This document shows positions 35,547 through 60,565 of a stretch of 64,000 nt of DNA, piece by piece. The stretch spans positions 167,028,981-167,092,980 of the forward strand of contig NC_068981.1 in NCBI RefSeq assembly GCF_001194135.2, read 5' to 3'. Under the pieces are notes generated by a model. That model was given only the letters and a program-made list of their open reading frames with translations. It made no database searches and was not told the origin of the DNA. Within the stretch, counting starts at the first letter, position 1; the number at the start of each line of letters is the position of its first letter. Source of the DNA: Octopus bimaculoides. Taxonomy: Eukaryota. Made by a program: the position numbers and the translations under genes.

Positions 35547-35848
35547 TCACAAACACTCTTTCAGTGGAGAATACTGCATGTCTCTTTGTTGGCCTGGTAT
35601 ACGGAATCCACTAGAACAAGCAATGTTATTACCATCATCAAATTCTTGGTTATTCATGTCACTAAATCTGATGCTAGCTTGGTCATCTTTCTGTTGATTT
35701 CTGTTGAGTCGTTTGACTTTGGTACAAATACGATGGTAGTATAAAAAGACAGAAAGGAAAATTAACAGGAAACAGACAAGAACAATAACAAAAATCACCG
35801 TGCCACTCAGTTTCTGAGATTCCACAGATGTCTTTGTTCTACCAAATC
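35547..35848 (-). CDS. MEGF9: MEGF9-like terminal exon: TM helix and cytoplasmic tail
   Basis: tctttcAG|GA; FGRTKTSVESQKLSG-TVIFVIVLVCFLLIFLSVFLYY-HRICTKVKR...DMQYSPLKECL then TGA; hydrophobic 22-mer followed by a basic stop-transfer sequence. Confidence 0.9.
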
Positions 35849-36776
35849 CTGAAAGAAAGAAATATAAAAGATATCAAAAAATTCCACTGTTAGAGAAATA
35901 TCAGAATGAAAAAAATGCAGAAAAGTTATCAATTTTTTCTTTTTGTTTAACATTAAATATTGTAATTTTCATCAACTATATTGGTACAGGTATAACTCTG
36001 TAGTTAAGAAATTTACTTCCCAATTTTACCAAAATCTGGGTAATCTATATGAAAAAAAAAAACAAAAATAAAAAAAGCCCAACTTCTTTGTTTTTCTTTT
36101 TTACAATATTCAGTTTCATAATCTGACCAAGAGTTAAATAGATATAAATGATCATACACCAAGTTTTCAAAATTAATGTTAATTTTAAAATTGCCCCATG
36201 AAGTTTTGATACCTACACAATACACTGTGTAACAAAAGTTTTATTTTCTTTTTATCTTTGGTCAGTAAGTGTCATTTCTTATTTGCTTCTATCTAGAAAT
36301 CAAAGGAAATGACAACTATTCCCTTCAAAGTTTGCTTTTGTGACCTGGACACCAATGTTTTGAAACTGACCTAATTTCCATTACATTTCAGACAGGTTCA
36401 ACACTGAGTTGCTGAGGCAGAAATATCATTATAGGAAATGTTCTGTTCAATACCAGAGATTTGCTTGTCAGTTACTTGACCTTAACCTCTTGAGCATTTC
36501 CCTTAATGGCTGACAATAAGTGCACCTCTGATCATGTGCAGGAGTAGTAGGGGAGCATTATAGTTATGTGTTGAGAGGGATTCTTTGGGGTTTGAATAAA
36601 TGTAACAAAAGCAAATTTTGAAAGAAATATTAGCTATTTTTCATACTTTCTAAGGGTAAGCAAATAAGAAATAACAGCTGCTACCCAAGGACGAAAATCG
36701 TGTTATGCTGTGTTATAGAGGCGAAACATAGATTAGAATTAAAAATAAAGAAAGAACTCAAACAATAATAATTCAC

Positions 36777-36881
36777 CTTCATATGTGCAATTCTTATGTA
36801 GAATTGGGTCACCAACATAACCAGGAAGGCAGTCATCACAAGCGAAACCAGTTGTATTATGACGGCAATGCATACATGCAC
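36777..36881 (-). CDS. MEGF9: MEGF9-like exon 6: laminin-type EGF
   Basis: ctttAG|GT; (G)[34 protein letters not shown]; donor GAAG|GTgaat; 105 nt, phase 1-1. The HNTTGFxC motif is shared with MEGF9/attractin-type LE repeats. Confidence 0.92.
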
Positions 36882-37366
36882 CTAAAGAAATATAAAACAC
36901 ATATTTTCTTTTCACCTTCAAATACTGTAGAAAGGAAATGACTACTATTCCCTTCAAAGTTTGCTTATCACTTGGTCAAGATGTATGAGCTTTTAATAAT
37001 GTTTAACACAATAGATTTTGGACCAGGCTGAATTTAACTATGTGGCTGCAAAACCACTTTAGCCAATCTTCTAATCAACCATCAGTGTGTCAGTCAGTTC
37101 TACAAGGCCCTATGTTTGGTTCCCTTTTATTCTATGTTTTTTGTCAACACTCATGAAAAATCTGTTGAAAACATGAGTTATTTGTAAAACTAAGATTAAG
37201 TGAGTGATTTTAAGATAGGCTGTTTGAACTAAAACCATATACAGCTTGGTTGAACATCAGATGCAGAGGAAAAGTTATAAAAAAATTCCTAAATCATAAG
37301 AATATTATATGTCTGACAATACAAACATTGCCAATAGTAACAAATTTGAAAAGCATAAAACCTTAC

Positions 37367-37525
37367 CAGTGCGGGGATTGCAAATCTCAGGGGAGTTCAG
37401 GTCAACATTGCCATTGCAAATGCACTTGGCACACATGTCATAATACGAAAAGTAGCCATTGTCACAAACGTCACAATTTTTACCATTATAACCCTTCTTA
37501 CAGTAGCAAGTAGCTACTTCTCCCA
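37367..37525 (-). CDS. MEGF9: MEGF9-like exon 5: laminin-type EGF
   Basis: ttcAG|TG; (V)GEVATCYCKKGYNGKNCDVCDNGYFSYYDMCAKCICNGNVDLNSPEICNPRT; donor ACTG|GTaagg; 159 nt, phase 1-1. Resembles the recalled human MEGF9 segment CKDGYIGPNCNKCENGYY...CQCHGHVDP...ICKPESG. Confidence 0.92.
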
Positions 37526-37636
37526 CTGAAAGAAATAGGTTAAAAAATAATAAGTAGTGTAAGAAAAATTAAAGCAATATAATGAAAAACAATCCATTTT
37601 AAGACAAAAAGATTATTATTATAAAAGTTCATTCAT

Positions 37637-38020
37637 CTACTTGTTTCAGTCATTTTACTGCAGGCCATGCTGAAGCACTGCTTTGAAGGGTTTTAACCGA
37701 ACAAATCGACACCAGGACTTATTTCTTTAAGCCTAGTACTTATTCTATCAGTCTCGTTTGCCTAAATGCTGAGTTACAGGAATGTAAACACACCAACACT
37801 GGTTGTCAAATGGCGATGGGAGGACAAACACAGATACAAAGACACACACACATATATATACATGATGGGCTTCTTTCAGTTTCCATCCACCGAATTCACT
37901 CACTTTGGTTGACCTGAGGCTATAGTAGAAGATACTGGCCCAAGGTGCCATGCAGTGGGACTGAACCTGGATCCATGTGGTTAGGAAGCAAGCTTCTTAT
38001 CACACTGCCACGCCTGCACT
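37637..38020 (-). mobile_element. SINE family A
   Basis: Full-length reverse-complement copy in intron 4. Confidence 0.85.
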
Positions 38021-38982
38021 TATGTGTTCTTGTGGTAGTATTTTCCCAAATTAAAGTCTAGACTTGGAAAACAAGAAAGGCTTGAAAATATAGTCAGGTG
38101 GGCAAGTGTTTTCATAACATTGAGTTGACCAATGCCTTGGGAGATAAATTTAGCAGGTGGAAGCTCTGTGGAAGCCCATCCTGAATGTGTGTGTGTGTGT
38201 GTGTGTGTGTAAATTAGTCCACTGAACAATAGCTTGAAATATCTAAGTGATGAGTAAGATGGTGAGCTGACAGAATTTTAAAAGCACCAGCAAAATGCTA
38301 ATGGCATTTCATCCACCTCTATGTTCTGAGTTCAAATTCTACTGAGGTCGACTTTGCCTTTTTATCCTTTTGGGGCCAATAAAATAAGTATCAGTTGAGC
38401 ACTGGGGTTGATGTAATCAACAGGCTCCCTCTGTCGAAATTACTGGCCGCGTGTCAAAACGTGAAAACAATATTTAAGTAACAAGTTATGTCCCTTTATG
38501 ACATTCATTAAATATAGATAGATATACCAAAGTACCAGGAGCAATATAATCAATCAAAACTGTTGACGCTCAGCATTTTGCCCGGTATACTAATGTTTCT
38601 ACCAGCTCACCGCCTTCTGAAGCAGAAATATTGTTATAGCAAATATTCTGCTCAATACCACAGACCTGCTTGTCAGTTGCTTGACTTTAACCACTTGAGC
38701 GTTTCCCTTAGTGGCTGGCAATATGTGCGTCTCTGATCACAAGCAGAAGTAGTGGGGGAGCATCATAGCTGTGTGTAGAGGATTCTTTGGGGTTTGAATA
38801 AATATAACAAAAGTAAAGTTTGAAGGAAGTATTAGCTATTTTCCATACTTTCTAGGGGTAAGCTAATAGGAAATAACAGTTGCTACCCAAGGACAAAAAT
38901 CATATTATACTGTGTAATGGACAAATTAACAGATTTGGTTATGTCATTGCTGAAGAAGAAAACAGATAAAAAATGGACTTAC

Positions 38983-39174
38983 CTAGGGTACAAAAGAAAC
39001 TCGACCTTGAATTGCAAGGGCAGGACAGGCAATAGCCATCTTTTTCATAGAAAAAGTGCTTACATTGATGACAAAACAAACCAGTATATCCTTCCCGACA
39101 GGGACATATCTCTAAGGAATTCAGGTCACATTTCTCACCGCCAGGTTTAACTCCAGGAGAGTGACAAGAACAAA
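38983..39174 (-). CDS. MEGF9: MEGF9-like exon 4: laminin-type EGF
   Basis: tttcAG|TT; (V)CSCHSPGVKPGGEKCDLNSLEICPCREGYTGLFCHQCKHFFYEKDGYCLSCPCNSRSSFFCTL; donor CTAG|GTaagt; 192 nt, phase 1-1. Confidence 0.92.
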
Positions 39175-40915
39175 CTGAAATATTAGACAATGTCAGATTT
39201 TGAAATAAGAGCAATTGTGTAAAAGTGAATGCCAGACAAAGAAATATAAAAAAAAAAAGAAAGAAAAATCCTCAAAAATAAAGAAGAAATGTGTAATTAT
39301 TAAGTATTTGGTTTACTGACAAATTACTAGAAACAAACCTTATCTTTGTTGTTAAACAACAAACTGGGGAACATTAAACATTGTGCATGAATGACTGTCT
39401 GGTAAGAAGTTTGCTTCTGAACTACATGGTCCTGGGTCCAGTTCCATAGTGTGGAACCTTGGGCCATAGTCTTATGTCATAGCCCCAAGCTGGCAAAAGC
39501 CTTGTGAGTGGATTTGGTAGATAGAAACGAAAAGAAGCCTGTCATATGTGTGTGGGAGGGGGGGATGTCTCCTTGTCTTGACACTGCAAGAATGTCTGGC
39601 CATGGGTAAATATTACCTTATTTAGAAACAACCATATTCATTTTAAAACTATAGATATAGTATCTTAGAGAGATTGGTCAAGAAATATGCAGCTTAAAAC
39701 TATAGATAAACTACATATTTTTAAGGGTGATAAGAAAATAAATACAGTTTTCCATATTAACAGGGGCTGGATAGTTTTGTTATCCAGCCATATTTGGTGT
39801 ACTGGGTTCATGGGTACACTGGATATTTGGGAACAAAAACAAAACATGAAAAATAACAACGATACCAAATCAACATACTCCCAGAAAAATGGTACGCATG
39901 CTCAGAAATGTTACACAATGTCAGATTTTGAAATAAGAGCAATTGTGTAAAAGTGAATGTCAGACAAAGAAATACAAAAAAGAAGAAAAAAACCCTCAAA
40001 AATAAAGAAGAAATGTGTAATTATTCAGTATTTGGCTTACTGACAAATTACTAGAAACAAACCTTATATTTGGCCACATCATATCTTGACCAATTTCTCT
40101 AAGATATTATATCTATAGTTTTAAAATGAATATGGTTGTTTCCAAATAAAGCAATATTTACCCATGGCCAGACATATAATTCGACAAAATTATCCCTAAG
40201 TCAGCTTCTACATGCCAGGATCAGATGATTCCTGCTTGTGCCACCTACCACTGCAGCTCCCAGACAGTAAGGCTAAAGTCAATCCCCCACCAATAATTCC
40301 ACACTCCAGGGGATTCAAATCAGGAGAGTAAGAGAGTCAAACGATCATAGAAAATATTGTGATCTTGGATTTAATTCGCGCTCTCCTCATAACAAAGCAT
40401 TTGTATTAGATGTCCCTGTGCACCACAAGTGAAAACGTGAACTTCACAAACTGTTTAGCAATGGCTTTCATCAACCAGCTGGAGTCATTGTTAATGATGT
40501 ACTGGACTTACTGGATGAACCCAGCCATTCTGGAGCCTGGTGTCGCCTCCTGGCCCACCAGTCCTCAGTCAAATCGTCCAACCCATGCTAGCATGGAAAG
40601 CGGATGTTAAACGATGATGATGATGATGAATGTGAATAAGGATTACATTTAACAGAGTAACCAGAATTTGGCTTATTTTTACTAGGTACAAGGAGGATCC
40701 ATGCAGAGAAAGAGGTACAGTTTATCAAGTTGAGAATTTTTCCCAAAGACCAACCTAAATTATCTATTTGAACATTTCAATTCAGAATCATAGAACTCAT
40801 ATCATCAAACAAANNNNNNNNNNNNNNNNNNNNNNNNNNNNNNNNNNNNNNNNNNNNNNNNNNNNNNNNNNNNNNNNNNNNNNNNNNNNNNNNNNNNNNN
40901 NNNNNNNNNNNNNNN

Positions 40916-41003
40916 GATACATAAATAGAGTAAAATGTGTTATTGAGAAGACCTTCAAGGCAAAACCATGTGACATCTGCTTTCACAGTTTTTGTGATGC
41001 TGG
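40916..41003 (-). CDS. MEGF9: MEGF9-like exon 3 (partial, runs into N-gap): FN3 strands C'-F
   Basis: Acceptor ttttctttatcaatttcAG|CC, phase 1; (A)SITKTVKADVTWFCLEGLLNNTFYSIYVS matches the FN3 L-x-x-x-T-x-Y-x-I-x-V signature. The donor probably lies in gap 40814-40915. Confidence 0.8.
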
Positions 41004-41077
41004 CTGAAATTGATAAAGAAAATTCCAAGATTGATAAAAAGCAATTTTATTGCTTGCGTGTGTGTGGTGTGTGTGTG

Positions 41078-41118
<41 letters not shown>

Positions 41119-41498
41119 TATTTGATAAGCCTTGTGAATGGATTTGGCAAACAAAAATTGAAAGAAGCCTTTCATATGTGTGTATGTGCATGCGTTACTG
41201 TCTCCCTGCCTTGACATTATACAACAGTCGTAAACAAATGTCACTGTTGTGCGAGTGGTGTCCCTTCATTTCCAATTTCCTGTCTCTGGTCATGGGGAAA
41301 TGTTAACTTGTCTGGAAACAAGTGAGAGTTGGAAAAGGTGAGGCAACCAGCCCTAGAAAATCTGCTTCAAGAAAATTCTGCCTGACCCATATGACTATGG
41401 AAAAGCGAACATTAAACTGATGAGGATGATCATATGATTCCTACCCTGCATTTAGGAAGTTGAGGCAAACATTCTCATGTTTTTTCTAAACATTATTA

Positions 41499-41660
41499 TA
41501 GGTGCAGATATGGCTGTGTAGCAAGAACTTGCTTCCCAACCACATGGTTTCAAGTTCAGTCTAACTGCAAGGCACCTTGAGCAAGTGTCTTTTACTATAG
41601 CCTCAAGCCGACCAAAAACTTGTGATTGGATATAGTAGATGGAAAGAAGATTGTCGTGTG

Positions 41661-41707
<47 letters not shown>

Positions 41708-41920
41708 ATGTCTTTGTGTCTGTGTTCTCCTCACCCATCACTGCTTGACAACCAATGTCAGTGTGTTTACGCCCCCCTGTAACTTACCGGTTAGGCAAAA
41801 GAGACCGACAGAACAAGTACTAGGCTTTAAAAAATAGTCCTGGGGTCAATTTGTTCGACTAAAACACCTCAAGGTGGTGCTCCAGTATGGCCGTAGTCAA
41901 ATGACTGAAATAAGTAAAAT
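41499..41920 (+). mobile_element. SINE family A with internal (TA)n
   Basis: ataggtgcagatatggctgtg...ggcaccttgagcaagtgtc...gactgaaataagtaaaa. Confidence 0.85.
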
Positions 41921-42701
41921 AACAAAAAAATCACAGAGACAATTGATCAGCAGTTAAGTTCTTTATGATCCAAGGGTTAAGAGCTTGAAATATTAAATTA
42001 AAAACTCAATGTTTTTGTTCAGTGTAGGTTTTCCAAAATATTCATTTATAACTTAAGGATTATCTCTCAAATTTAGAGGTAGGGTATAGTCAATTATACC
42101 AATCCTTATACTTGACTGGCATTTATTTTATCTACCCTAGAGGGACAAAAGGTAATAATGATGTTGGTAGTATTAAAACTCAGAATGTAAAAGATTATAA
42201 GTAAATACTTCATGGGATTTTGTCCGATGTTCAAATGATTCTGCCACACCAGTGCCCTAAATATAAATGATCCAAAATTATTTTGATATAGTTGGAAGAT
42301 TTGGACATAGAAGCAAAAACATCTAAATGCTTGAGATGAATTGTTCTTAAGATTATCAATCTCATTCTCATAAATAAAAGATTATTTTCATTTTATTCAA
42401 GCTCAGTGGTTGAATGGACAGTTTGCCTTGAAATAAAGTTCCTAGTTTGAATCTAGAACATATCAAAGAGTAAAAGCCCTAATGATGATTGTAGATCAAA
42501 TTAGTGTAAATTTTGAAAAACCACTTTCATTTCTAAAGATGAGGTTAAAAAAAAAAAAAAAACAGAAAAAAAAAACACTGCCATCTTGCAGGAACATCAG
42601 GTACCAAATTAGATTCTAAAAATCCTTAATCCAAGTTTACTGTAACCAGCATAATCTTCACCAGCAATCAGGTCAGCTTAGATTAAAACAAAATATTTTA
42701 C

Positions 42702-43106
42702 CTTCATCTGAATCCTTTTGTTTGTATTCAATTATATATTCATGTATATCACCAAATAAACCAATTTTGTTATTAACCATTTCATGGGGGGTTTTGTATG
42801 AGAATCCCTTGTTTACAGAATTCGTACTGTTTTCAGTTGATTGTTGTTCATTTTTTCTAAACTTAACAGGTTTATTTCCTGCTGTTTGATATGATTGATT
42901 TGGTTGACTTTCTTCTGATAATGGAATAGTAAGCTGGTGCAGTAATAAATCATTCGCATCTTTGTCAATATTTGCATGGCTAATATAATTGCTAGGTAGA
43001 AAGTATACAGGACGTTCCCAGATGAGGTAGTATTTATTTGAGGAGTCATTCTCATTGGAAAATTGGAATGCTTCAAGTTCAAATGGAGCCAAGGCAGATG
43101 ATATAG
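42702..43106 (-). CDS. MEGF9: MEGF9-like exon 2: FN3 strands A-C with long insertion
   Basis: Acceptor ttctttacAG|CT; 405 nt, phase 1-1; APFELEAFQF...YYLIWERP...GDIHEYIIEYKQKDSDE; donor GAAG|GTaaaa. Confidence 0.85.
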
Positions 43107-44997
43107 CTGTAAAGAAGAATAAAGAAATAACATAAATGAGAGAAATGAAATCTAACAATGTTCTTTTTAGAAAAAAAAAGAAAAAGAAAAAGACATTTAC
43201 TTCAGAAAATAAGATTACTAGATTGATTGCTCTCGTTATGCCAAGAACACCAGATTTAATACAAGTTTATTACCCAGTATTGTAAATGTTGGTCAGTTTT
43301 GCTATAACAAGTTCATGTCTTTGAAATTCTTTCACCACTTGCAATATAGCAAGTAGAACTTTTCCAATATTTGAAAATATTTTGTAGTCCCTAAGTTTTC
43401 AGTCTGATATTTTAGCAAATATATCAAGTTAAGTGCAAAAGGTACATGGCCTAGTGGTAGGGTGTTGCACTCATGACCACATGATTGTGGTTTTGATTCC
43501 CAGACCAGCAGTGTGTTGTGTTCTTAAGCAAAACATTTCATTTCAATTCTGTCCACTCAACAGTAAATGAGTAACCTTGCGACAGACTGGTGTTCTGTTC
43601 AGAGGTCAGAGGGAATGTTGACTAGCCTGTATGCCTGCCTTGCCAGTGAAGTGGCATCATTCAAAAGCTAAGTCAATGTGAGGAAGCACATTGGGTATAA
43701 GAACATCTGATACTCTGGTTGATGCAGTGGTATCAAGTTAAGTACACAGTGAAAAGTTATTGAAGAGAATTATTTTTGGTCACTAACTGGGACACATTTT
43801 CCCTTGCTTATAGACACATACACATAGTTTTCTATATTGTTAAATCAAAATTTTAACTTTTAAAAATTAATTTTATTAAGAAGATATATTTCTTCATCAT
43901 CTAATTGTACATTTAGTTCTCTGCGCTCGTTTGGCTTCCACATAGCTTCTGTAAACCAAATCCTGCACCACAGGACTAAACTCAGAGCCATATAATTCTT
44001 AAGCAAACTCGTAAACCATGATCAATGCCTATTATTGTGTAGCTCTGATTGAGTAGGCTTTTATCAAAGGTGTTCTGGTAGTGTCTATCCCTTTTATAAG
44101 GTAGCATGATGTGATGGAAATTTGGCTTTTATTTCTAGAAGGTGAAGCAAACCTGTAAAAGTTCTTTTGCTGGCACAAGGGGTTATACAGTCATCATTGT
44201 TAAGACTCTGATCAGACCTGATCAAGCAGACATTTCAGCTATAATCATACTTCTGCTTTCTGCTGTGCAGGAACCCAGAGACACATTATTCAGCATGGAC
44301 ATTTGGCTGCTACTTTTAGCAGGCTGAGTCACCCTGTAGAGTCTCCTTCACTGGCTTAGGTTTTTATAATTGTTGTTGTTTAGCATCAAGTTACTCTCAT
44401 TGAGTAGACTTATGATGAAAGACATTCCAGTCTTGACCATTCCATCTCTTTGCATGTCAAGAGCAATACTGTCCAATATGTCCACCTAGATTTTAGATGG
44501 TGGAGTGCAATTTGAGGGAGATTTGGCTGTTATTTTTAGCAGGTTGAGGGGCCAAGTAGAGGCTTCCTCATTTGCTTGATGATGTATATGCCACATATAT
44601 ATATGATGCAGTACATCCAAGTTTCCCCTCAATACCACCAACTAAACATGAAAGATATTGGATAATGGAGTTCTAGATATAAGCACAGACATGGCTGTGT
44701 GGTAAGAAGCTTGCTTGGTTCTGGGCTCAATCCCACTGTGTGGTACCTTGGGCAAGTATCTTTTAGTATAGTTCCAGGCTGATCATAGCCTTGAGTGTAT
44801 TTGGTAGATGGAAACTAAAAGAAGCCTGTTGTATATGTATGTGTGTGTGTGTGTATTTGTGTTTGTCCCTCACCTTTGCTTGACAACTGGTGCTGGTTTG
44901 TTTACATCTCCATAACTTAGCAGTTTGGCAAAATAGACTGATAGAATAAGTACCAGGCTTAAAAATAAGTACTGGGGTCAATTCTTTTTGATTAGAC

Positions 44998-45764: not shown

Positions 45765-46262
45765 ATGTTAGATGCAGTGTGCAAGGAAGAATACTGCACT
45801 GGTTTGGTCATGTAATTCAGATGGATATCAATAGCTCCATAAAGAAGTACTGATCACTCAAAGTGGATGGAACTCATGGAAAAGGTAGACCCAGAAGAAC
45901 ATGGGATGAAGTTCTGAAGGATGACTTCAAGACACTGAACCTTTTGTTGGATATGACAAAGGACCAAGATATCTGGTGCCTTGCTGTAGTCAAGAAGACC
46001 TGTCCTCCACAGCAGAAGTGTTAAGGCTGCTTCCCATGATGAAAAGGATTGGCCTGCAAGAGTCATGTGCCAGTACCACATAAAAAACATTTGTGCCAGT
46101 ACCACATTAAAAGCATTCAGCTTTGGCCTTAGGAAGAGCATCCAGTCATAGAAACCAAGGCAAATCAGACTGAAACTTGGTGCAGCTCTCCTGCTTGCCA
46201 TCTTTGGTCAAACTATCCAACCCATGCCAGCATGGAAAATGGACGTTAAAGGATGATGATGA

Positions 46263-46265
<3 letters not shown>
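45765..46265 (+). mobile_element. RTE LINE 3' end plus SINE family B, then (TA)n
   Basis: LHWFGHV...GKGRPRRTWDEVLK; tail cccatgccagcatggaaaatggacgttaaaggatgatgatg. Confidence 0.75.
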
Positions 46266-46314
<49 letters not shown>

Positions 46315-47664
46315 CAAATTTTCAGAAAATAAAAGAGGAAGACAGGTGAAAGAACAACAAGATGCATTAGTTTAATGCTTGGGAAGAATGGAAAAGTCTT
46401 TGATGTTCCAAGCCTACATTCTTTGACAGAAAGGATTGAGAAGGAAAAATGGAGAGAGAACAAAAAAAAAAAAAAATGTGTAGGAATCAGTGGTTCAACA
46501 TGATGAAATGAACCCCTATACAGTTATCACAAGCATATTTTCCTTTCCTTTTTTGCCTAATGAACATTCTTATTATTATCAATCCCCTCTGTGTATGCTA
46601 CAAAGTACATATTTTGCTAACACAAGAGAGCAAAACAATCACATAATAAATGTAACATTCAAACTCAAAAGTTGTGATCTGAAGTAATTTGTCAATTATA
46701 TAAATCTGCTCAAGTGTTTGATATTTAGGTGTGTTGTGTTAAATTTCAGGTTTATAGTAATATAAATCAACTCAGTACTTAATTGGTGCTACACTTTATT
46801 GACCTCAGAAGAATGAAAAGCAAATTTGACCTTGATGGAATTTTGAACAACGAACGTAAAAAACTTTAAATACAATATGGTATTTTGTCCAATGCTCACA
46901 TAATTCTTGTGTATGTCATTTTACTAACATTCTAACCATGTCTATACTGTGTATGTTGGACTTTGAGCTGTAGATTTTAGCATTATTGTGGGACTTCTGA
47001 TAGACCAAAAAGGGGAAAACAATAAAAGAGTATGATGGTATTAATACAATTAATATGAAATTTGCAGTCAGTGCATTCTAAAAATATGTGGTGGAAAGAT
47101 GGCCCTAGGAATAAAGGATTGCATATATTAAGTGCAGAATTTATGGCAATAAATGCTAGCAAGCAGGTGTAAAGTGAGAGAGACAGAGAGAGAGAAACNN
47201 NNNNNNNNNNNNNNNNNNNNNNNNNNNNNNNNNNNNNNNNNNNNNNNNNNNNNNNNNNNNNNNNNNNNNNNNNNNNNNNNNNNNNNNNNNNNNNNNNNNN
47301 NNNNNNNNNNNNNNNNNNNNNNNNNNNNNNNNNNNNNNNNNNNNNNNNNNNNNNNNNNNNNNNNNNNNNNNNNNNNNNNNNNNNNNNNNNNNNNNGGAGA
47401 TAGAGCGGGAGAACAGCAGTTTTAAAATGAAGATTTCATCACAACAAACTAGTCAAGCAACTTATATTTTGATGGTTCAACATTCTCATTTGAATAAGAT
47501 AACACTTCTAATTTTTCACATATGTATAGTTCCCAAGACAAACTCAATTACTAATAATAACTAATTACGTACTAATTAGGGAAGTGGTTCCCAATCTTTA
47601 TGACTTTGTCATATACTGAAAATGAAACAAAAAGCATTACTGGTAAACTTCACATGGGATTTAG

Positions 47665-49465: not shown

Positions 49466-49565
49466 NNNNNNNNNNNNNNNNNNNNNNNNNNNNNNNNNNN
49501 NNNNNNNNNNNNNNNNNNNNNNNNNNNNNNNNNNNNNNNNNNNNNNNNNNNNNNNNNNNNNNNNN

Positions 49566-49600
<35 letters not shown>

Positions 49601-50340: not shown

Positions 50341-50467
50341 CTGTTAGCTTGGATGCTTGTTTGTCTACATCAGAAGTTCTCAATGAATTTTTGCCTATGG
50401 ATCCCTCTGATTCCTATTTTGCTCAGGTGGAACATCATAACTATTCAATGTTTAAAAAATATTATTA

Positions 50468-50888: not shown

Positions 50889-51269
50889 ATATTTTCATAA
50901 TCAAACATTATTAGGAATTGTATAAAAAAAATGTTAAAATATTTTGTATATTGTAGAAGTATAACCAGTTCAGTGCACAAAAACTTTAACAATATCTTAT
51001 ATGGGCCCCAGTTGAAAACCACTGATCTGCATGATATAGACCAGACATGAGCACCTATCTATGCGATATAGTTCATCGTCAAACAGGTCACATGACTGTA
51101 AAAATTCAAGGTAATTTTTTGTTAGGTGTGCCGTTGAGAAAGTTTCACAGGCTACAGTTTACACATGACTGACATAGATCCTCTTTACCCATGCACTTTT
51201 TCTTTTGACAATCTCTCACAGTAGGAGTTCCACACCTCTTTCCTTTCAGCAACATTAACCCTTCAATAC

Positions 51270-51557
51270 TTGAGCGAAGTCGTTGCCAGTGCCACTGGAC
51301 TGGCTCCTGTGCAGGTGGCATGTAAAATACACCATTTGAGCGTGGCCGTAGCCAGTACCACCTGACTGGCCCTCGTGTCGGTGGCACGTAAGAGCACCCA
51401 CTACACTCTCGGAGTGGTTGGCGTTAGGAAGGGCATCCAGCTGTAGAAACACTGCCAGATAAGATTGGAGCCTGGTGCAGCCAGTTGGTTTGCCAGTCCT
51501 TAGTCAAATTGTCTAACCCATGCTAGCATGGAAAGTGGACGTTAAACGATGAACGAT
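51270..51557 (+). mobile_element. SINE family B
   Basis: ggcgttaggaagggcatccagctgtagaaac...cccatgctagcatggaaagtggacgttaaacgatg. Confidence 0.85.
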
Positions 51558-51916
51558 GGTCATATCTGACCCAAATATTCTACTTTGTTTTGTTCAAACT
51601 AACCTGAGCTGTCCTCTCACACCTACCCTACAATGTCATTTTGAAAATAAACTATCATATCACCAAAATCTCAAAGCCACAAGATAATGCATGGTTAATT
51701 CAAATGAATAAGCATTACATTTAACAGATTAAACTGAATGCTAAAGAGTTAAAAGTGAGAATACATTGAGCAGTCTCAGTACATTCCCTCCTCACTGGCA
51801 CCTTAGTTTTTTTTTTAGGCATACTGTCTTACAATCCAGAAAATCACATGATCCTCATATTGCAGAACATGTGCAAATCTCCTGTTTACTGCTTCTCCCT
51901 TAATTGAGAGACAAAC

Positions 51917-51924
<8 letters not shown>

Positions 51925-51952
<28 letters not shown>

Positions 51953-52270
51953 GTAGAAAGTAACAATACACATGCTTTGGACAAAGACAAAACAATTTCC
52001 ATACATATACAGACACACACATAAAAATACAAAGACAGAAATACACACAGACAAAAACACACACACACAGGCACAGAGACATATACAGATATACACACAT
52101 TACAAAAATAGACATACACATATACACACACATAGGCACAAATACACACTGACACTCACATGCACAAATGCACTTAGATACATACACATAAACATACTCA
52201 CTTACATATCCACATACCAATGCATACACAAAAATAGTACATACATACATGCTGATACACAGACAAATAC
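51925..52270. repeat. (GA)n plus degenerate (CA/TACA)n low-complexity tract
   Basis: Direct inspection; explains the overlapping Cys/Val- and His/Thr-rich ORFs. Confidence 0.9.
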
Positions 52271-53059
52271 ATATGCTGAAGGCTCCTACAGTTTACAGTC
52301 TTCACATCATCAAGCTGGTTGTTGTCTTTTCTAACCACATTGCCTCCTGTAGAAATGAACATTAATGGGCTTTGTCTGCAAACAAGTTCAGCACTTCTTG
52401 CCAAATATACATTTTGCCATTTTCATTGAATAGAAACTGGCCCTTTGGATAAGCATAAATATCCAAGTTTCAGTTTCCTTCTGCAATGAAATCAATATAG
52501 CCAATCAAGCTTTGATGGACAACTGCAATCTTTAAAGGTCAAGCAGTTGATATTGTCTACCACATATTCAGTGCATTGAAGAAATAAATCACAAAGTAAA
52601 CAGAAGTGATGCCATCAGACATATGGAATGGTAGGTAGTGTATATACGTATACAGAAAGAATATAAATATTATGTCTTAAGTGGGGATAAGGTATTTAAA
52701 ATTATAATCATTTGTTCTCAACTAAAGGAAAAATAGATCAATGGTTTCTTTTATTTTTTTTTTGCATTAGTTATTACCCAATCCAGCAGACCTATGACCT
52801 GAAGATGAACAGTTGTGGTTTTCCTAATTTTCTAAAAAAATACAACATTTTTTAATAACAATAATAAATATAATGGTATCAAATTTTGCTACAAGGGCAG
52901 CAATTTTGGGGGAGTGTTCAACTTGACTCCGAAAAGATGAAAGGCAAAGTTGACCTTGGCAGAATTTGAACTCAGAATGTAGTGACGGGCAAAATACTGC
53001 TAAGCATTTCGTTCAGTGCACTAACAATTGTACCAGCTCGCCACCTTAATCATAATAAT

Positions 53060-53960
53060 AATAATAATTTCATTTATTTGCCACAAGGGTAAAGGATGAG
53101 GGGGACAATACAAAGACAAAGTGTGGGGGTTTACATATAATGAAATAAAAAAAAGGGAAAAAATGGAAAGAAAGAAGTTCAGTATACACTGAAAAAGAAG
53201 GGACATATTCATAGTATATAAAGGTTAAAAGAAAAGTGGCAGGGAGGATGATAGAGATGTGACCCTCCTGATACAGGAAGGTCTCTAGGGATAATGGAGG
53301 AACCCCACTGTCCGAGATTCCCCTGAAACTCCCAAGAGCAAGTGACCTCTCCAATTCCTTCTCCCCAACTCACAGGTCTACACTTAGAGAGGTACCATCC
53401 ATTCTTACGATTTTTGCAACTTTCACCCACCTTTCAATAAACTCACTCAAGGACAGCACTTCCCTCTACACTCTCAATTTCTTTTTCAAGTGAAACTTAA
53501 AGAAGTCAATGAGAGCTCTACTAATGAGGAATGTATCTGTCCTCATGCCTTTCAGCCTTGCCTGCCTGATTGAAGGAGGGCAGCAGTGCAATCATCACTA
53601 GACTTGGCTGACAGATCGATCTGTCCCATACGTAACAACTGTTCAGCATAACTCCACAAGTCAGCAATGCCCATACACTGAACGAGGGCATGCAGAATGG
53701 TTTCGTCACTCTGCATGCACTTTGGACAAGTCCATCTGACAGCACATCCATGCCTGTAGAGTTTACCTCGAACCAGTAGTGCCTCCTGGTAGAACTGTAA
53801 AGCCAAGCACATCTGAACATTATCCATGATAGTTCCCGACTGGAAAGTTCTCCAGAACAGACAAGCCAGTTCGTTCTAATAATGTGGAATGGGCTGCTCA
53901 ACATGAAGAAAATTCTAACTGGGCCCTACCTGCAAAGTCATGCACTGTTTATCTTGATAT
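53060..53960 (-). mobile_element. L1/Tx1-clade LINE 3' fragment
   Basis: RGKLYRHG...TCPKCMQSDETILHALVQC (CxxC...ETxxH...C knuckle), with a 3' UTR and (att)n tail near 53060. Confidence 0.8.
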
Positions 53961-56900
53961 GAGATCACCATGTTGCGCACATATGAATGTAATGCATGTG
54001 CATGGTGTACCCTTATCAGATGGGTAGTTATGATGGGTACATTGGGCTCCATATATTTGTACCCCAGTGTCACTTTGATGGCATGTGCTGCTCTCTTTCA
54101 CATCATTGTTTTAAATGTCTGCTTTTCTATGCTTGCATGGGTTGGATGGAATTTGTTAGAGATGGATTTTCCAAAGTAGAATGCCTTTCTTGTGCTGCCA
54201 ACCCACTCCTGTTTCCAAGTAAGTTAATATTCCTTATGACCAAGCATGTTTTCAAGGGAAACAGGAGACAAAAGTATGCATGATAGTAGTGCCATGCAGT
54301 GGAAATGAACCCAAGATTATGTGGTTGGGAAGCAAACTTCTTACTACACAGCTGCATCTGCACCTATAAGTTTTCTTTTTTTAAGTAAGGTATGATTTAA
54401 AATAGATGTGTTGAGTTTTGCTAGTTGGGTCATAGACAATCGACAGCCACACCAAATAATCAAACTCAAATAGCAATTTTCCTAGATTGGCACAAGGCTA
54501 CAAATATGTAAAGCAAAGGTTATAGTTAAACAAATCGACTTCAGTACAAGACTGATAAGGATATGAATGAATGTCAAAGTCAACACTAGGTGAAAAGTGT
54601 ACTTTTCACAACCATTTTCTTCTGAACTTGCTTCAAGCCAGCTTCTTCCTCCTTTCTTCACTTTCGAAAGGACGAAACCTGAAATATTACAATCTACATA
54701 TATTCTACTACTGACCTTATGAAATTCAAGATTAGCCAGATTTGAACTAAGAATGTAGCAGACAAAATGAAATACAAGCTATTTTGGTGTGTTGTTCTAT
54801 ATTTTCTGTCACTATTTTCCTTTTTCTCCTCCTCCTCCTCTTCCTACCATTAATGTCGACAATTTGTTTCCAACAAAAGCACAAGGCATGAAATTTTAGA
54901 AGTGGAGCGTAGTTGATGTTTATCAACCTCAGAGGGATAAAAGGTGAAATTTGAATCTGGAATGTAAAGAGTTGAAAAATAACACTAACATGTTAACCTA
55001 CTCCAGCACTCTCTATACTCTTCCCTGTCACCATTAAGTAAACTACTTGAACTACGGCCATCTATGACTAGACTTGGGATGACTACGGGAGAGGTTTTTG
55101 GCTGTCTTCTCCAGGCAGGTGGGATTTGAACTCATAATGTAGAGAGCCGGAAAATATACCTGAAAGCACTTTTGCCAGTGCACCAATGACTCTGGCACCC
55201 TTCCACCCACTAGAGCAATGTCTGGGAATTGAACCCATGGTCTAGCGAACATCCTAACCACTAAGTCACTTGCCTTCACAATACAAATAATAATAATTTC
55301 TAACATTTACACAAGACCACCTTGTTGGTGTGGGTTAGCCAAGGGTTTGAAACACAGTAAATATTTCACTTGTCTAGAGCCTGGGTTCTCTCTTCTTTGA
55401 TGTCCAGTATCTATCTTAAAAGGCTTCTTTATAAATTTTTTTAAAATCTGCCATAGACTTATATTCTATACTGGATATTTTTATGCATTTGGTAATGTCT
55501 TCAGTCACAATTTACAACACATCTTGTTGCTACTCAGAGAAATATACAGAACTGAAGTAAATTTTTATGGTGCTTTCATTCTTCACAATATTTTGTATTA
55601 CTAACAAAAAGGCATTTGAAATATCCTTTGATACTTTTGGCATTCACATTTTAATTTTAATGAGACAAAGCAGCAGTGAAACTATTAAAAGTACAAACTT
55701 TAATAAATCTTCTTTGGAATTCTGTATAATTTACCCAGTATAACTGTAGCTAAGCAAACAGTCATGTTCATTTTTATGTAAAAAAAAAAAAAGAAAAAAA
55801 CTAGAAAAATGAAGAATTGAACTTTTGCAAAAGCATACATGCTTGAATTTCTCTCTCTCTCTCTAAACTTTTCTATAAAGATATTTTCAGTAAATCTAAT
55901 TTCAATACTGCATGTCTGCAATTTTTCTTTTTTCATATTCTTCCTTTATATATCTTGACATTTTGTTGAATGTCAACGAAAAATTTTGACATATAGGAAT
56001 TAGAATATCAAAATGAACTTTCTATCTTTTAACATTCCTCATTGGGTTACAAGTCTACATTCGTAAAAATGAAGCCTCATTCGAATAGATACGAAGATTT
56101 AATTAAGAAGTAAGTATATAAGTCAACTGAATTAATAACCCTAACCTAAATAAGCTATTGGTTTTTTAATTTATTTATCCAGGTGTGACAGGATGGAAAA
56201 CGTCTAGAGCTGCACAAAATATCTTTTATTACCTATGTGGCTATGCAGGAACCAAATTTGCTTAGTGGGTGCAAACCCAGGTCCAAAATTTCTCTTAGAA
56301 ACAAGGTCGATTTTCTCAACCTTTGTATAAAAAACAAAAACAGGTATAATAATAATAATAATAATAATAATAATTGTACATCAATCAAATCGTATAAATC
56401 CAATTATGGAAAAGTAATGTTTCAAATCAGATCAAAAACGTTTCTACGCTCGTTCGTTTGCAGGGGCATGTTCAAAATGTTTTCACTACCCTAAAAAAAT
56501 TATCGAGGGTGCAAACGTACCCGCTGTGTTTCTGAGCCAATGATCGAAGTGGACACAATTTGAACTAAGAAACATGGGACACAAATTAAAGAGTAAATAA
56601 TAAACATGTAGTCTTGTTTTCAAACTCCACCAAAGTCTATTGGATCGGAGTTAAATAACAAAATAGGGCAGATATACAGTCTAATTATACTATCTTCATT
56701 ATTTACATTTCTATTCAAATAAATGCTGTATAGAAACACAGTTTGAATTGCTCTTAATTAAATAGGACCAAGTTTCACGTGCTTTTCTATTTGTTAGACA
56801 TCCTCAACATCTGTCTACTTGCAAACAAATAAGAGTACTCTGGGAGTATAACGTACCATTCAAATTTTCACAAAAGCTTTTCGCCCTCAACCTCTAAAAC

Positions 56901-57638
56901 ATTCTAGTTGCCGGGCATTTGAAAAGAATAATGTTGATATAGCTAAATATTATTAAGAATTGTATTAAGATTGTTAAAATATTTTCTGCATTGTCTAAGT
57001 ATAACCAACTTTAAGGATACGGTTGAGAACCAAGAAGCAACAGTTACATCATCATCATCATCAATATTTGTGGAACTTGGTGGTGGGGTGTTAAATTTTA
57101 CGAGAGAATGAAAGCAGCATGTCATGCTCCGTTAAGAAAAAAATTTTTTTTTTTTCATATTCGTAATCTCCGAATCTAAAACGTAGGAATCCGAAAAATC
57201 TTTTTTTTTTTTAAATGCATTTTTCAAGGAGAGGTGCGAAACTGCATTAGCCCCGGAGGTTTGGCTGCTATTTCTAACAGATGGAGCGACAATATAGAAG
57301 CTCCTTCGTTGGTGTTTAACCACGAAGCCCACATTGTCGAAAGCCCTATAATTAAACGTCCAGCGATGACTATCCTGTTTCATATAATTTAGGACTGCAT
57401 TCTCCTATGTGGCATTTACTTTCTGAGAGAGAAGACGTGTAGTTTGTGAGATATTTGGCTGCTGAGACTAGCAGGTCGAGCGACTGCGTAGGGTAGATAA
57501 GATACTTTCACAGTGGTTCGTTTTATAGTTTGCGTTATAAATAAATGTGCAGGTAGTACTTAAAGATAATAATAATAATAATAATTTCAAAATTTTGGTA
57601 CAACACCAGCAATTTGCGGAGAGGGGATAAGTCCATTA

Positions 57639-59038
57639 CGGCGGAGGTAAAGACAATGGACCGCACCCCCTTTGGGATGTTTTTTCAATTTTTTTTTTAG
57701 AGGAACCCACTATATCGAGTGCAGAGATTCCGAATCTGCAAAAAAATCTGCATTTCAAAATTTAAATCCCCCCACCCCAATTTCTTAAATTTTCATTAAA
57801 AAAAAATTTTTTCTGGCGAAATACGTAGAAAAAAATACGGAGATTATGATTCTGAAAAAAAAAATTTTGTAAATTTTCAATTAAAAAAAGATAATAATNN
57901 NNNNNNNNNNNNNNNNNNNNNNNNNNNNNNNNNNNNNNNNNNNNNNNNNNNNNNNNNNNNNNNNNNNNNNNNNNNNNNNNNNNNNNNNNNNNNNNNNNNN
58001 NNNNNNNNNNNNNNNNNNNNNNNNNNNNNNNNNNNNNNNNNNNNNNNNNNNNNNNNNNNNNNNNNNNNNNNNNNNNNNNNNNNNNNNNNNNNNNNNNNNN
58101 NNNNNNNNNNNNNNNNNNNNNNNNNNNNNNNNNNNNNNNNNNNNNNNNNNNNNNNNNNNNNNNNNNNNNNNNNNNNNNNNNNNNNNNNNNNNNNNNNNNN
58201 NNNNNNNNNNNNNNNNNNNNNNNNNNNNNNNNNNNNNNNNNNNNNNNNNNNNNNNNNNNNNNNNNNNNNNNNNNNNNNNNNNNNNNNNNNNNNNNNNNNN
58301 NNNNNNNNNNNNNNNNNNNNNNNNNNNNNNNNNNNNNNNNNNNNNNNNNNNNNNNNNNNNNNNNNNNNNNNNNNNNNNNNNNNNNNNNNNNNNNNNNNNN
58401 NNNNNNNNNNNNNNNNNNNNNNNNNNNNNNNNNNNNNNNNNNNNNNNNNNNNNNNNNNNNNNNNNNNNNNNNNNNNNNNNNNNNNNNNNNNNNNNNNNNN
58501 NNNNNNNNNNNNNNNNNNNNNNNNNNNNNNNNNNNNNNNNNNNNNNNNNNNNNNNNNNNNNNNNNNNNNNNNNNNNNNNNNNNNNNNNNNNNNNNNNNNN
58601 NNNNNNNNNNNNNNNNNNNNNNNNNNNNNNNNNNNNNNNNNNNNNNNNNNNNNNNNNNNNNNNNNNNNNNNNNNNNNNNNNNNNNNNNNNNNNNNNNNNN
58701 NNNNNNNNNNNNNNNNNNNNNNNNNNNNNNNNNNNNNNNNNNNNNNNNNNNNNNNNNNNNNNNNNNNNNNNNNNNNNNNNNNNNNNNNNNNNNNNNNNNN
58801 NNNNNNNNNNNNNNNNNNNNNNNNNNNNNNNNNNNNNNNNNNNNNNNNNNNNNNNNNNNNNNNNNNNNNNNTTAAGTGAAAATTTAAGAATTTTTTTTAG
58901 GGGGTGGGGGAATTAACATTTTGAAATGCAGATTTTTTTTTTTGCAGATTCGGAATCCTCGCACTCGACATAGTGGGTCCCTGAAAAAAACAAAAACCAT
59001 CCCAAAGTGGGTGCAGTACATTGTCTTTACCTCTGCCG
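57639..59038. mobile_element. Long-TIR DNA transposon inserted in a family C SINE; interior is a gap
   Basis: cggcggaggtaaagacaatg... / ...cattgtctttacctctgccg; ~170-bp inverted arms; candidate 7-bp TSD tccatta / tcgatta. Confidence 0.8.
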
Positions 59039-59331
59039 TCGATTACATCGACTCCAGTGCTCAACTGGTATTTATTTTATCGACTACGATAAAGTTAAAG
59101 GCAAAATCGACTCTGCGAACACTTGGATCCATAACGGAGTGGATGAAGCAAAGATATATATATATATATATAAGTAGTTATGAAAGATGACATCGGTATA
59201 GAAACCAACAGAAATGTTACCAGGGAAAATACCAAAATACAACTGAAAATTTGGCGATCTTTAGTAGCATCACCAAAAATGTTCAGATAAGTTTATAATA
59301 AATTACAAACTTACTGTACGCAAGACACTAC

Positions 59332-59370
<39 letters not shown>

Positions 59371-60480
59371 GTGTATATCTGTCTATCAAATTTAACGTCA
59401 AAATTACATAACGTTTATTCCAGCGGATTTAGATTGTATGTTTTCTCCCCTCCATTCGTCAATTCAACACAAGTTGCTCATTATAGGGAATACTATAACA
59501 TGCTCTCCCGTGTTAATTATTTAGCAAAATAAAAAAGATCCAGCAGCAAAATGATATTTATTATGCTTCGTAGTAAACATGACTTGTTTAAAAATTATAC
59601 TCACTGACAAATATATATATCTATAACACTATTTGAAGCTTTTAAACAATATCTGCCGTATGTAAACACCATTTTTTCATGCATACAAACATACACACGT
59701 ACATATATATGTACAGTTTTATTTCCCGTTGCATCAGAATATAAAACCACGATGAGTATTTGTTGTCAAATGTGTGGAATGAATTTTCCGATTAGCAGTG
59801 CTTTATAATTAAGAACATCTTTATATATATATATAAGTAAAATCCCGCTAGTATTAAAACTGAAACAAAAGGGGGGAAATCAGACACGTGGAGACACAAT
59901 ATCTATCAAATGGAAAAAAAGCACAGTTTCCTTCTTTTAAAAATATTTTTGTTGTTCAGCCAGACTTAGGGTAAAAAGTGCAAAAGCGTTCCAGCCGTGA
60001 CAATCTCGTCCTTTTTTTCAGGCCTAGGAGATTCTGGATTACATTTTTCAATGGGCATCTCCTTTTTTCAAGATGGTAGGGTGTAATTTAAAGGATATTT
60101 GGTTGTAGTTTCTCAGCTTTTAGACATAGAAGTTTCATCATTGGTTCGATAATTTCTGTAAAACTAAACAGAAGCAGTCGCCCATTTATTCAGACACATA
60201 ATAAATAGAGATTATATAAAGTATCCCTTTCTTTATCTAAAAAGTTTTTCGAGGCAAAATAAATTATTAATATTGTTGGAAAACATTAATTCCACCTTTA
60301 AGATTTTTGATTCACAGAACGTAATGTTGCTAAATAAAATCTCACAAATAAATAATAATTTCATATTTATATATATATAATTTGATTACGAAATTTCAAT
60401 AGCTTCAATGACAATAACATTTCGTAAGTATACACAAAACAGCAACAGTAGTCCGATATAAAAAGAAAAGACAATCATAC

Positions 60481-60565
60481 CTGCATTTTGTGCTTTGTAA
60501 CAAGATATACAGCAGAGATATAGTAGAGAAATGACAAAGTTCATGGATAGAAGAAAATTAGACAT
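60481..60565 (-). CDS. MEGF9: FN3/laminin-EGF membrane protein (MEGF9-like), exon 1, signal peptide
   Basis: gcaaccATG at 60565 (the ORF-track start at 60586 is GTG); MSNFLLSMNFVISLLYLCCISCYKAQNA is hydrophobic; donor GCAG|GTatga, phase 1, compatible with exon 2. Linkage across the 17-kb intron is inferred. MEGF9 orthology is not established. Confidence 0.7.

Follow-up and report, generated by a model that had tools for sequence, protein, structure and literature searches.

The first description of vertebrate MEGF9 (EGFL5) is that of Brandt-Bohne et al. (2007, Biochem J 401:447), as cited in PMC11703103. Its architecture is taken here from fetched sequences (P0050, P0054 and P0108) together with Pfam, and like the octopus protein described below it is a type-I single-pass protein whose ectodomain ends in laminin-type EGF (LE) repeats and whose cytoplasmic tail is short; the last two LE repeats are homologous to those of octopus, with laminin gamma1 LE modules as the best PDB match. 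The differences between the two are as follows. First, vertebrate MEGF9 has five LE repeats and the octopus protein three. Secondly, the vertebrate N-terminus is rich in Pro, Ser and Thr over about 200 aa, whereas octopus has a fibronectin type III (FN3) domain with a disordered loop insert. Thirdly, the stalk that joins the last LE repeat to the transmembrane (TM) helix is far longer in vertebrates. Finally, vertebrate MEGF9 carries the juxtamembrane motif PFWTIELKEDNISFSS, of which octopus keeps KDDQASIRFS only, without PFWTIEL, and the vertebrate proteins end in ..NxYKA or FKV where octopus ends in YSPLKECL. MEGF9 of the hemichordate Saccoglossus kowalevskii (XP_006825306.2, P0043) shares the tail motif, as LPFWTIELRKDDSMSFNDY, and, unlike octopus, has five LE repeats that follow straight after the signal peptide without FN3; because it has no mucin-like N-terminus, that region is not family-defining. 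The original prediction for this locus described vertebrate MEGF9 as having five LE repeats and no FN3, which is true of the fetched vertebrate sequences and of Saccoglossus.

Other proteins share parts of this architecture. The best sequence and structure match of octopus LE2-LE3 is laminin gamma1 III3-5 (PDB 1klo and 1npe; E = 9e-18, 39% identity; Foldseek E = 4e-8), with the common eight-cysteine LE pattern, although laminin is a secreted heterotrimer subunit without a TM helix. Usherin, attractin/MEGF8 and netrin receptors have domain types in common with the octopus protein (LE, FN3 and a single TM helix), but are far larger, differ in domain order (LE precedes FN3 in usherin) and are without the tail motif; none was recovered by HMMER as a full-length match in a single stretch.

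Exon structure and the gap in exon 3

The Octopus bimaculoides gene occupies the minus strand from position 60565 down to 35547 of the window (the whole 64,000-nucleotide stretch of DNA analysed), in seven exon pieces:

60481..60565, minus strand: exon 1, with ATG at 60565, predicted signal peptide MSNFLLSMNFVISLLYLCCISCYKAQNA, a phase 1 end and donor GTATGA
42702..43106, minus strand: exon 2, 405 nt, phase 1-1, predicted FN3 strands A-B (aa ~29-63), 83-aa insert (aa 64-146) and start of strand C
40916..41003, minus strand: exon 3, visible 88 nt, predicted FN3 strands C'-F (..VKADVTWFCLEGLLNNTFYSIYV), directly abutting the run of N
40814..40915, minus strand: assembly gap, covering the 3' 80 nt of exon 3 (predicted FN3 strand G and linker), the GT donor and ~75 nt of intron 3
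38983..39174, minus strand: exon 4, 192 nt, phase 1-1, LE1 and first half of LE2
37367..37525, minus strand: exon 5, 159 nt, phase 1-1, second half of LE2 and first half of LE3
36777..36881, minus strand: exon 6, 105 nt, phase 1-1, second half of LE3
35547..35848, minus strand: exon 7, short stalk, predicted TM helix GTVIFVIVLVCFLLIFLSVFLYY, 64-aa cytoplasmic tail and stop TGA at 35547-35549

All visible acceptors are AG and all visible donors GT, all junctions are phase 1, and the internal exon lengths (405, 192, 159 and 105 nt) are divisible by three; the seven GT-AG-bounded, phase 1 exons that had been proposed were thus all located. The visible coding sequence translates to 192 + 251 aa, in keeping with the ~445 aa claimed for the protein. 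A tblastn search with the 471-aa O. sinensis orthologue matches only the seven exon blocks at both the O. bimaculoides and O. sinensis loci, with no further exons in introns or behind the other gaps (47199-47395, 49466-49565 and 57899-58871, all within intron 1), and a tRNA scan of the window found none.

Exon 3 ends within the 102-N gap at 40814-40915, which makes the FN3-to-LE junction unreadable in the window, and this gap is the reason that RefSeq splits the gene into two fragments, LOC128249049 (N-terminal 203 aa) and LOC106881922 (C-terminal 158 aa). The junction can be bridged through O. sinensis, whose locus (L001) is free of gaps and colinear with the flanks: window position 40916 corresponds to L001 22209 and position 40813 to L001 22365, with 95.5% identity. 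The 155-nt interval between them (L001 22210-22364) fills the gap colinearly and contains ...SANYSTSSFRSAEFLLYTDENNSSKTN + G|GTAGAG, which keeps the reading frame and phase 1. It provides 26 missing whole codons and completes the partly read codon on either side of them. Overall, the O. bimaculoides and O. sinensis loci align colinearly at 85–93% identity, with exons 93–96% identical (96.5% for exon 1) and without indels or stops, and the seven orthologous O. sinensis exons, when joined, translate exactly to XP_029640575.1 (471 aa). Exon 7 is identical to RefSeq XP_014787932.2. From these sequence comparisons we are confident that the locus is one seven-exon gene, whose product of about 471 aa is a MEGF9-family protein that crosses the membrane once.

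The current RefSeq annotation would instead have two separate genes here, as XP_052827480.1 and XP_014787932.2 are distinct entries and the gap conceals the junction between them. We regard this as very improbable. The N-terminal model finishes in junk (..FYSIYCTHEPSTPNMAG) precisely at the gap, and the split therefore looks like an assembly artefact; the 158-aa model begins in the middle of LE2/LE3 and could not fold alone. The phases agree (1-1), the gap-free O. sinensis locus gives a single 471-aa product, the corresponding protein is likewise a single one in Argonauta, Sepia and other molluscs, and the whole ORF is present on a decapod transcript contig. Under the single-gene reading, the two 'uncharacterized' RefSeq fragments belong together as a single MEGF9-family gene of ~471 aa, and joining them is of value mostly for annotation.

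Domains of the predicted protein

The order proposed from the window, signal peptide - FN3 - three LE repeats - TM, is borne out by Pfam for the LE stretches, by AlphaFold2 (AF2) and Foldseek for FN3, and by the O. sinensis locus. The AF2 model was made on the O. sinensis orthologue and is a predicted rather than an experimental structure. Its hydrophobic N-terminus forms a helix at residues 2-21, and the 23-aa hydrophobic stretch near the C-terminus lies in a helix at 384-424, so that the predicted topology is that of a type-I protein, with a signal peptide at the N-terminus and one TM helix close to the C-terminus.

The B-C loop of the FN3 domain holds a disordered insert of 83 aa (aa 64-146), which divides the domain in two, is rich in Asn, Gln and Ser, and is fast-evolving. 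Pfam fn3 (PF00041) finds aa 147-192 of the window protein with E = 0.012 and 16.2 bits, under the gathering cutoff of 25, and scores 18.4 bits on the O. sinensis orthologue, also under the cutoff, whereas 15 of 16 family members match at E ≤ 0.01 (best E = 4e-10). In the O. sinensis model there are seven strands (37-46, 49-59, 149-158, 166-171, 176-179, 187-196 and 200-209), with pLDDT of 84–95 for residues 147-210, 75–86 for 31-60 and below 50 for 64-146. Foldseek against the PDB ranks laminin gamma1 LE modules first, followed by dozens of FN3 domains at a probability of 1.00, with target TM-scores of 0.76–0.86 at best for alignments spanning the insert. The FN3 signature is present, with W58 (..YLIWERP) in strand B and LEGLLNNTFYSIYVSA for the L..L.P.T.Y.I.V.A pattern of strands E-F. 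The model thus points to a real FN3 fold, a predicted seven-strand beta-sandwich composed of residues 29-63 and 147-210. Three relatives have an uninterrupted FN3 domain (P0031, P0036 and P0120, from ENA, Logan and JGI assemblies), and the inserts of gastropods and bivalves are longer, rich in Ser, Thr and Asn, and contain two conserved cysteines that are absent in cephalopods. Because the insert splits the domain, threshold-based annotation overlooks FN3, and does so in every cephalopod entry.

The LE repeats are recognized readily, with Pfam EGF_laminin scoring 67 bits on the window protein (cutoff 21; three stretches, E = 1.6e-18) and matching all 16 family members. All 24 of the LE cysteines are in register and the 24 cysteine columns are invariant in the 16 members; the last repeat is about 17 aa from the TM helix. 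Octopus and all of the mollusc orthologues have three repeats, compared with 4–5 Pfam stretches in deuterostomes, and no extra cysteine-rich exon that could encode a further repeat is present in the window or the O. sinensis locus. Exon 5 aligns with the laminin gamma1 LE modules (1klo, E = 9e-18). We considered nidogen binding as a mechanism, as LE3 aligns to laminin gamma1 III4, and rejected it: the loop varies within the family and its Val is never kept. Cephalopods are only part-way similar (NVDLNSP, NIDPNSP) to the laminin nidogen-binding loop NIDPNAV, which is not conserved family-wide, and our literature search found no functional link between MEGF9 and nidogen.

Relationship to MEGF9 and distribution in molluscs

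Word-indexed homologue searches returned few relatives (1 and 6 matches), and it was an exhaustive HMMER scan of 1.84 billion representatives that uncovered the family. Proteins of 450–600 aa align with query residues ~146-445 as one stretch, from Sepia, Physella, Haliotis, Ylistrum, Sinanodonta, Batillaria, Bulinus, Candidula and Plakobranchus. The same arrangement of signal peptide, split FN3, three LE repeats, TM helix and tail is found in XP_029640575.1, O. vulgaris CAI9716401.1 ('MEGF9') and Argonauta hians, and the octopus layout is shared by Sepia pharaonis CAE1160631.1, Plakobranchus ocellatus 'MEGF9', Haliotis, Physella, Ylistrum and Sinanodonta, although the non-octopod orthologues differ from octopus in retaining PFWT[IV]EL. 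Identity to the octopus protein is ~90% in O. sinensis, 61% in Argonauta, ~36% in decapods and 20–29% in gastropods and bivalves. The decapod orthologue P0274 (507 aa, with the same layout) is a single unbroken ORF on a 1,664-nt contig assembled from SRR8281687; this is spliced transcript evidence, from a relative rather than from O. bimaculoides itself.

The domain order had been thought unusual and perhaps specific to cephalopods, a view that does not hold, since FN3-3LE-TM is standard in cephalopods, gastropods and bivalves. The original prediction also allowed that this could prove to be the ordinary architecture of invertebrate MEGF9; that is largely so in molluscs, and the hemichordate Saccoglossus differs. 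Judged from sequence, the octopus gene is the molluscan form of MEGF9 and no cephalopod novelty, with an ordinary layout that is already in public databases. Entries under MEGF9 or FN3 names include CAI9716401.1, Plakobranchus ocellatus (with Pfam fn3) and Pecten maximus, and a Batillaria entry is already titled 'Fibronectin type-III domain-containing protein'. Specialists will find no surprise in these findings. Our literature search on MEGF9 with FN3 or laminin-type EGF found no invertebrate forms.

The resemblance of the octopus tail to that of MEGF9, noted originally as KDDQASIRFS against KEDNISFSS, is probably a genuine homology: decapod cephalopod and other mollusc orthologues have PFWT[IV]ELKDDH..VNFS, beside the vertebrate PFWTIELKEDNISFSS. 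An HMM built from deuterostome tails alone scores 18–27 bits on mollusc proteins and matches none of the fetched laminin-size proteins, and a search with the tail profile returns short fragments only, of which the named matches are all MEGF9 and the rest unnamed vertebrate proteins. The octopus tail itself has no match to the deuterostome tail HMM, so its membership of MEGF9 is traced through a chain from octopods to decapods and other molluscs and from these to deuterostomes. Octopus LE2-LE3 also align to LE4-LE5 of Saccoglossus MEGF9 with 38% identity. On these alignments the O. bimaculoides gene is, with high probability, orthologous to the MEGF9-family gene of other molluscs.

It could be argued that these proteins form a lophotrochozoan-specific family of FN3-LE receptors, distantly paralogous to MEGF9 and sharing with it LE repeats and a brief motif in the tail. 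In their number of domains and at the N-terminus they are unlike deuterostome MEGF9 (three LE repeats rather than five; FN3 rather than none), similarity beyond the LE repeats is confined to the ~20-aa motif (18–27 bits), and RefSeq names are mostly 'uncharacterized' or 'laminin subunit alpha-like'. We consider such paralogy improbable, however, because no second protein with a MEGF9 tail was seen among the mollusc matches, PFWT[IV]ELK[DE]D lies at an equal distance past the TM helix, LE2-LE3 match the last two LE repeats of MEGF9, and mollusc members are already named MEGF9 in three source databases.

The octopod tail and proposed function

The 64-aa tail contains KDDQASIRFS, YSPL and a C-terminal ECL, all present in exon 7 as predicted. 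Decapod cephalopods, gastropods and bivalves all carry the complete motif PFWT[IV]EL[KR].D..[IVM].F; octopods retain no more of it than KDDQ..IRF, with RLNRNQQ in place of PFWTIEL. A juxtamembrane PFWT[IV]EL that is otherwise conserved from molluscs to vertebrates has been lost in octopods. The Y-x-x-L of YSPL is kept in all mollusc orthologues, and the C-terminal ECL of octopus is EDM, EDL or ETM in the others.

Loss of the motif raises the question of whether the O. bimaculoides copy is decaying or non-functional. The overall dN/dS of ~0.47 (from ~40 substitutions only) is not very low; it is ~0 in FN3 strands A-B, ~1.1 in the FN3 insert and 1 or more in the stalk/TM segment. Nonetheless, the seven visible exon pieces are open, without frameshifts or stops, the 24/24 LE cysteines are intact, the visible splice sites are all canonical and exons are more conserved than introns. 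Moreover, O. sinensis and Argonauta are also without the motif, their genes are intact, and the shared absence indicates an old loss. Decay is therefore extremely improbable.

The octopus protein is a type-I membrane glycoprotein in which the signal peptide is followed by the FN3 domain, the three LE repeats, a short stalk, a TM helix and the 64-aa tail. By analogy with other LE/FN3 proteins, the ectodomain probably binds a ligand in the extracellular matrix or on the cell surface. The three LE repeats should form a rigid rod, which would keep the FN3 domain and its loop at a distance from the membrane. Because the tail has no enzymatic domain it would act through short linear motifs: YSPL (YxxL) may be an endocytic sorting signal or an SH2-type docking site, and the C-terminal E-x-hydrophobic (ECL) would fit a class III PDZ ligand. 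A role as an adhesion or guidance receptor, put forward originally, is putative.

We speculate, tentatively and with some doubt, that molluscan MEGF9 arose from a phase 1-1 exon-shuffling domain exchange, undescribed in the literature, in which an FN3 domain with a large, fast-evolving and probably glycosylated loop insert took the place of the mucin-like region and the first two LE repeats of deuterostome MEGF9, the loss in the octopod tail being additional. If true, the loss of PFWT[IV]EL in octopods would imply a rewired intracellular coupling. MEGF9 is poorly understood and we know of no ligand for it; if the FN3 loop binds the ligand or is the counterpart of the mucin-like region, a comparison of the two forms could help to find one. 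What the protostome and deuterostome forms have in common is the final two LE repeats, the TM helix and the motif in the tail, while their N-termini are wholly different; the shared parts show the conserved core of MEGF9.

Organization of the gene and completion of exon 3

The window is AT-rich (36% GC) and repeat-rich, with nine N-runs. On the minus strand, from 60565 down to 35547, seven segments are open and bordered by canonical splice signals; they are the exons (E1–E7) of a gene for a type-I membrane protein of about 471 aa:

60481–60565, minus strand, E1, with the ATG at 60565
42702–43106, minus strand, E2
40916–41003, minus strand, visible part of E3
38983–39174, minus strand, E4
37367–37525, minus strand, E5
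36777–36881, minus strand, E6
35547–35848, minus strand, E7, with the stop codon TGA at 35547–35549

The acceptors are AG and the donors GT wherever they are visible, the junctions are phase 1 throughout, and the internal exon lengths are divisible by three. The visible translation is in two pieces, the first (192 aa) containing the signal peptide and an N-terminal domain, and the second (251 aa) three laminin-type EGF (LE) repeats, a stalk, a transmembrane (TM) helix and the tail. The original prediction had described these exons and this layout accurately, and the gene is a real, ordinary one.

E3 directly enters the N-run at 40814–40915 and its 3′ end and donor are unread in the window, so that the junction between the fibronectin type III (FN3) and LE parts cannot be verified from the window alone. 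Comparison was made with the orthologous Octopus sinensis locus (L001, CM016859.1), which is without gaps and aligns colinearly with window positions 61432 to 35000 (85–93% identity). The window sequence before the gap stops at L001 position 22209 and that after it picks up at 22365, with 95.5% identity; of the 155 nt between, 80 nt complete E3, and a donor (GTAGAG) and intron sequence (75 nt) follow. The E3 remainder encodes ..S ANYSTSSFRSAEFLLYTDENNSSKTN followed by the G of a split Val codon, giving a completed exon of 168 nt (phase 1-1). Joined in order, the O. sinensis exons at the seven orthologous positions yield exactly XP_029640575.1 (471 aa), and a tblastn search of both loci with this protein found no exon blocks beyond the seven. 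The other three flagged gaps are in intron 1.

The 102 N of the exon-3 gap match 155 nt in O. sinensis, and the 973 N at 57899–58871 match just some 500 nt at that colinear locus, so the length estimate for this latter run looks too large. Most of the assembly gaps have long microsatellites of the dinucleotides (TC)n, (AC)n and (TA)n beside them (41040–41120, 32620–32760 and many other sites), which probably caused the gaps. Copies of a single SINE-like interspersed repeat (pairwise identity 78–95%), several of which adjoin assembly gaps, including one just downstream of the exon-3 gap, are present together with two mobile-element remnants:

15451–15850, plus strand, SINE-like copy
33987–34275, plus strand, SINE-like copy
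34576–34760, plus strand, SINE-like copy
51272–51552, minus strand, SINE-like copy
40531–40629, minus strand, SINE-like copy
46123–46266, minus strand, SINE-like copy
29962–30285, plus strand, mariner/Tc1-type transposase ORF remnant (E=4e-5 for Pfam Transposase_1, slightly short of the cutoff)
53552–53827, minus strand, intron 1, retroelement remnant with a reverse-transcriptase zinc-binding region (28.2 bits for Pfam zf-RVT, over the cutoff)

Because of the assembly gap in E3, the gene stands in the current O. bimaculoides RefSeq annotation as two separate 'uncharacterized' models. XP_052827480.1 (P0003, 'uncharacterized protein LOC128249049') is identical to the N-terminal part and terminates exactly at the gap in 11 junk residues, read from a wrong frame or intron; the C-terminal part has an identical counterpart in XP_014787932.2 (158 aa), and these matches place the window in O. 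bimaculoides. The gap was spanned artificially by an older model of 419 aa, and the O. sinensis and Argonauta orthologues carry the name 'laminin subunit alpha-1(-like)'.

A split FN3 domain

The Pfam fn3 matches to the window protein (16.2 bits) and the O. sinensis protein (18.4 bits) are both below the cutoff of 25 and are limited to the domain's C-terminal half, because an 83-aa insert splits it. Among the 16 aligned family members, 15 match fn3 at E≤0.01, the best at E=4e-10. AlphaFold2, run on the 16-member alignment with the O. sinensis protein (about 90% identical to the window protein) as target, models seven strands, two at residues 37–59 (pLDDT 75–86) and five at 149–209 (pLDDT 84–95), with the intervening segment 64–146 below pLDDT 50. 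Foldseek searches of the PDB return dozens of FN3 domains, all at probability 1.00 and ranked after laminin LE matches, with target TM-scores of 0.76–0.86 at best, when the alignment crosses the insert. On the family alignment, the model and these structural matches, the N-terminal domain is a genuine FN3, with the 83-aa insert predicted to be a disordered extension of the B–C loop. Between the two Octopus species, FN3 strands A–B are without amino-acid changes, and dN/dS is about 1.1 for the insert and about 0.47 for the whole gene, the latter from about 40 substitutions.

A 382-aa relative (L002; ENA ERZ25072999, 501–1649), encoded by one intron-free ORF on a 658-kb contig, has an uninterrupted FN3, three LE repeats and a TM helix, followed by a tail with FWTVQLRDDHE. 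Together with the fetched proteins P0036 and P0120, it shows that the FN3–3LE form also occurs without the loop insert.

Relationship to MEGF9

HMMER, run exhaustively over 1.84 billion representatives, found many proteins of 350–600 aa that cover residues ~146–445 in a single stretch, and giant laminin-like proteins that match the LE repeats only. The single-stretch relatives include those of cephalopods (Sepia), gastropods (Physella, Haliotis, Batillaria, Bulinus, Candidula, Plakobranchus) and bivalves (Ylistrum, Sinanodonta, Pecten), and the layout of signal peptide, split FN3, three LE repeats, TM helix and tail is common to all of these. Outside the octopods their tails contain (R/K)PFWT[IV]E[LM]K.D..[VI][ND]F and end in Y-x-x-L-x-E-x-hydrophobic. 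Vertebrate proteins that the HMMER scan also returned (P0050, P0054, P0069, P0084, P0108 and P0110) have NAPFWTIELKEDNISFSSY as the corresponding motif, and a hemichordate protein named MEGF9 (XP_006825306.2) has LPFWTIELRKDDSMSF.

An HMM built from deuterostome tails only gives 18–27 bits with the mollusc proteins; it has no match among the large laminin-like proteins fetched, and does not reach the octopod tails. The named matches of a tail profile are all called MEGF9 or are vertebrate proteins without a name of their own. Octopus LE2–LE3 share 38% identity with LE4–LE5 of Saccoglossus MEGF9. The mollusc tail scores and this LE identity bear out the family originally proposed, and from these sequence comparisons we conclude that the gene most likely represents the molluscan form of MEGF9.

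In octopods the family tail has taken a derived form: O. bimaculoides (tail, 35547–35740), O. sinensis and Argonauta have all lost the juxtamembrane PFWT[IV]EL. This motif is conserved in vertebrates, in a hemichordate and, among molluscs, in decapod cephalopods, bivalves and gastropods. Retained are YSPL and KDDQASIRFS, the latter being the segment that had been likened to KEDNISFSS of MEGF9.

The molluscan layout and its possible role

Deuterostome MEGF9 has five LE repeats and no FN3, whereas the mollusc form has three LE repeats with an FN3. The original prediction was right about architecture and family but wrong on one point, the layout not being unusual for the clade: within molluscs FN3–3LE–TM is the rule. 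The Plakobranchus 'MEGF9' entry already has a precomputed PF00041 match, the Batillaria entry is already named 'Fibronectin type-III domain-containing protein', and a spliced transcript contig of a decapod cephalopod contains a complete, unbroken FN3–LE–TM ORF; for molluscs, FN3–LE–TM is thus largely the standard MEGF9 architecture. We found no description of this form in the searchable literature, where it appears undescribed, but the data are not new, the entries being in databases already.

Loop a of LE3 (37367–37420) reads NVDLNSP in cephalopods and NIDPNSP in a decapod, resembling NIDPNAV, the nidogen-binding heptapeptide of laminin gamma1 III4. A role for LE3 as a nidogen-binding module was rejected, as the loop likeness is not kept across the rest of the family.

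Vertebrate MEGF9 is reported to be a single-pass protein with nervous-system expression that is under developmental regulation (Brandt-Bohne 2007, as cited in PMC11703103). The readable parts of the octopus protein contain six N-x-S/T sequons, of which one (NQS) lies in the insert and five are extracellular, and the product would be a cell-surface glycoprotein. A rigid LE rod may present the FN3 and its loop for binding to matrix or another cell, and the short tail may signal or sort through its YxxL and C-terminal E-x-hydrophobic motifs, the latter presumably a class III PDZ-ligand pattern.
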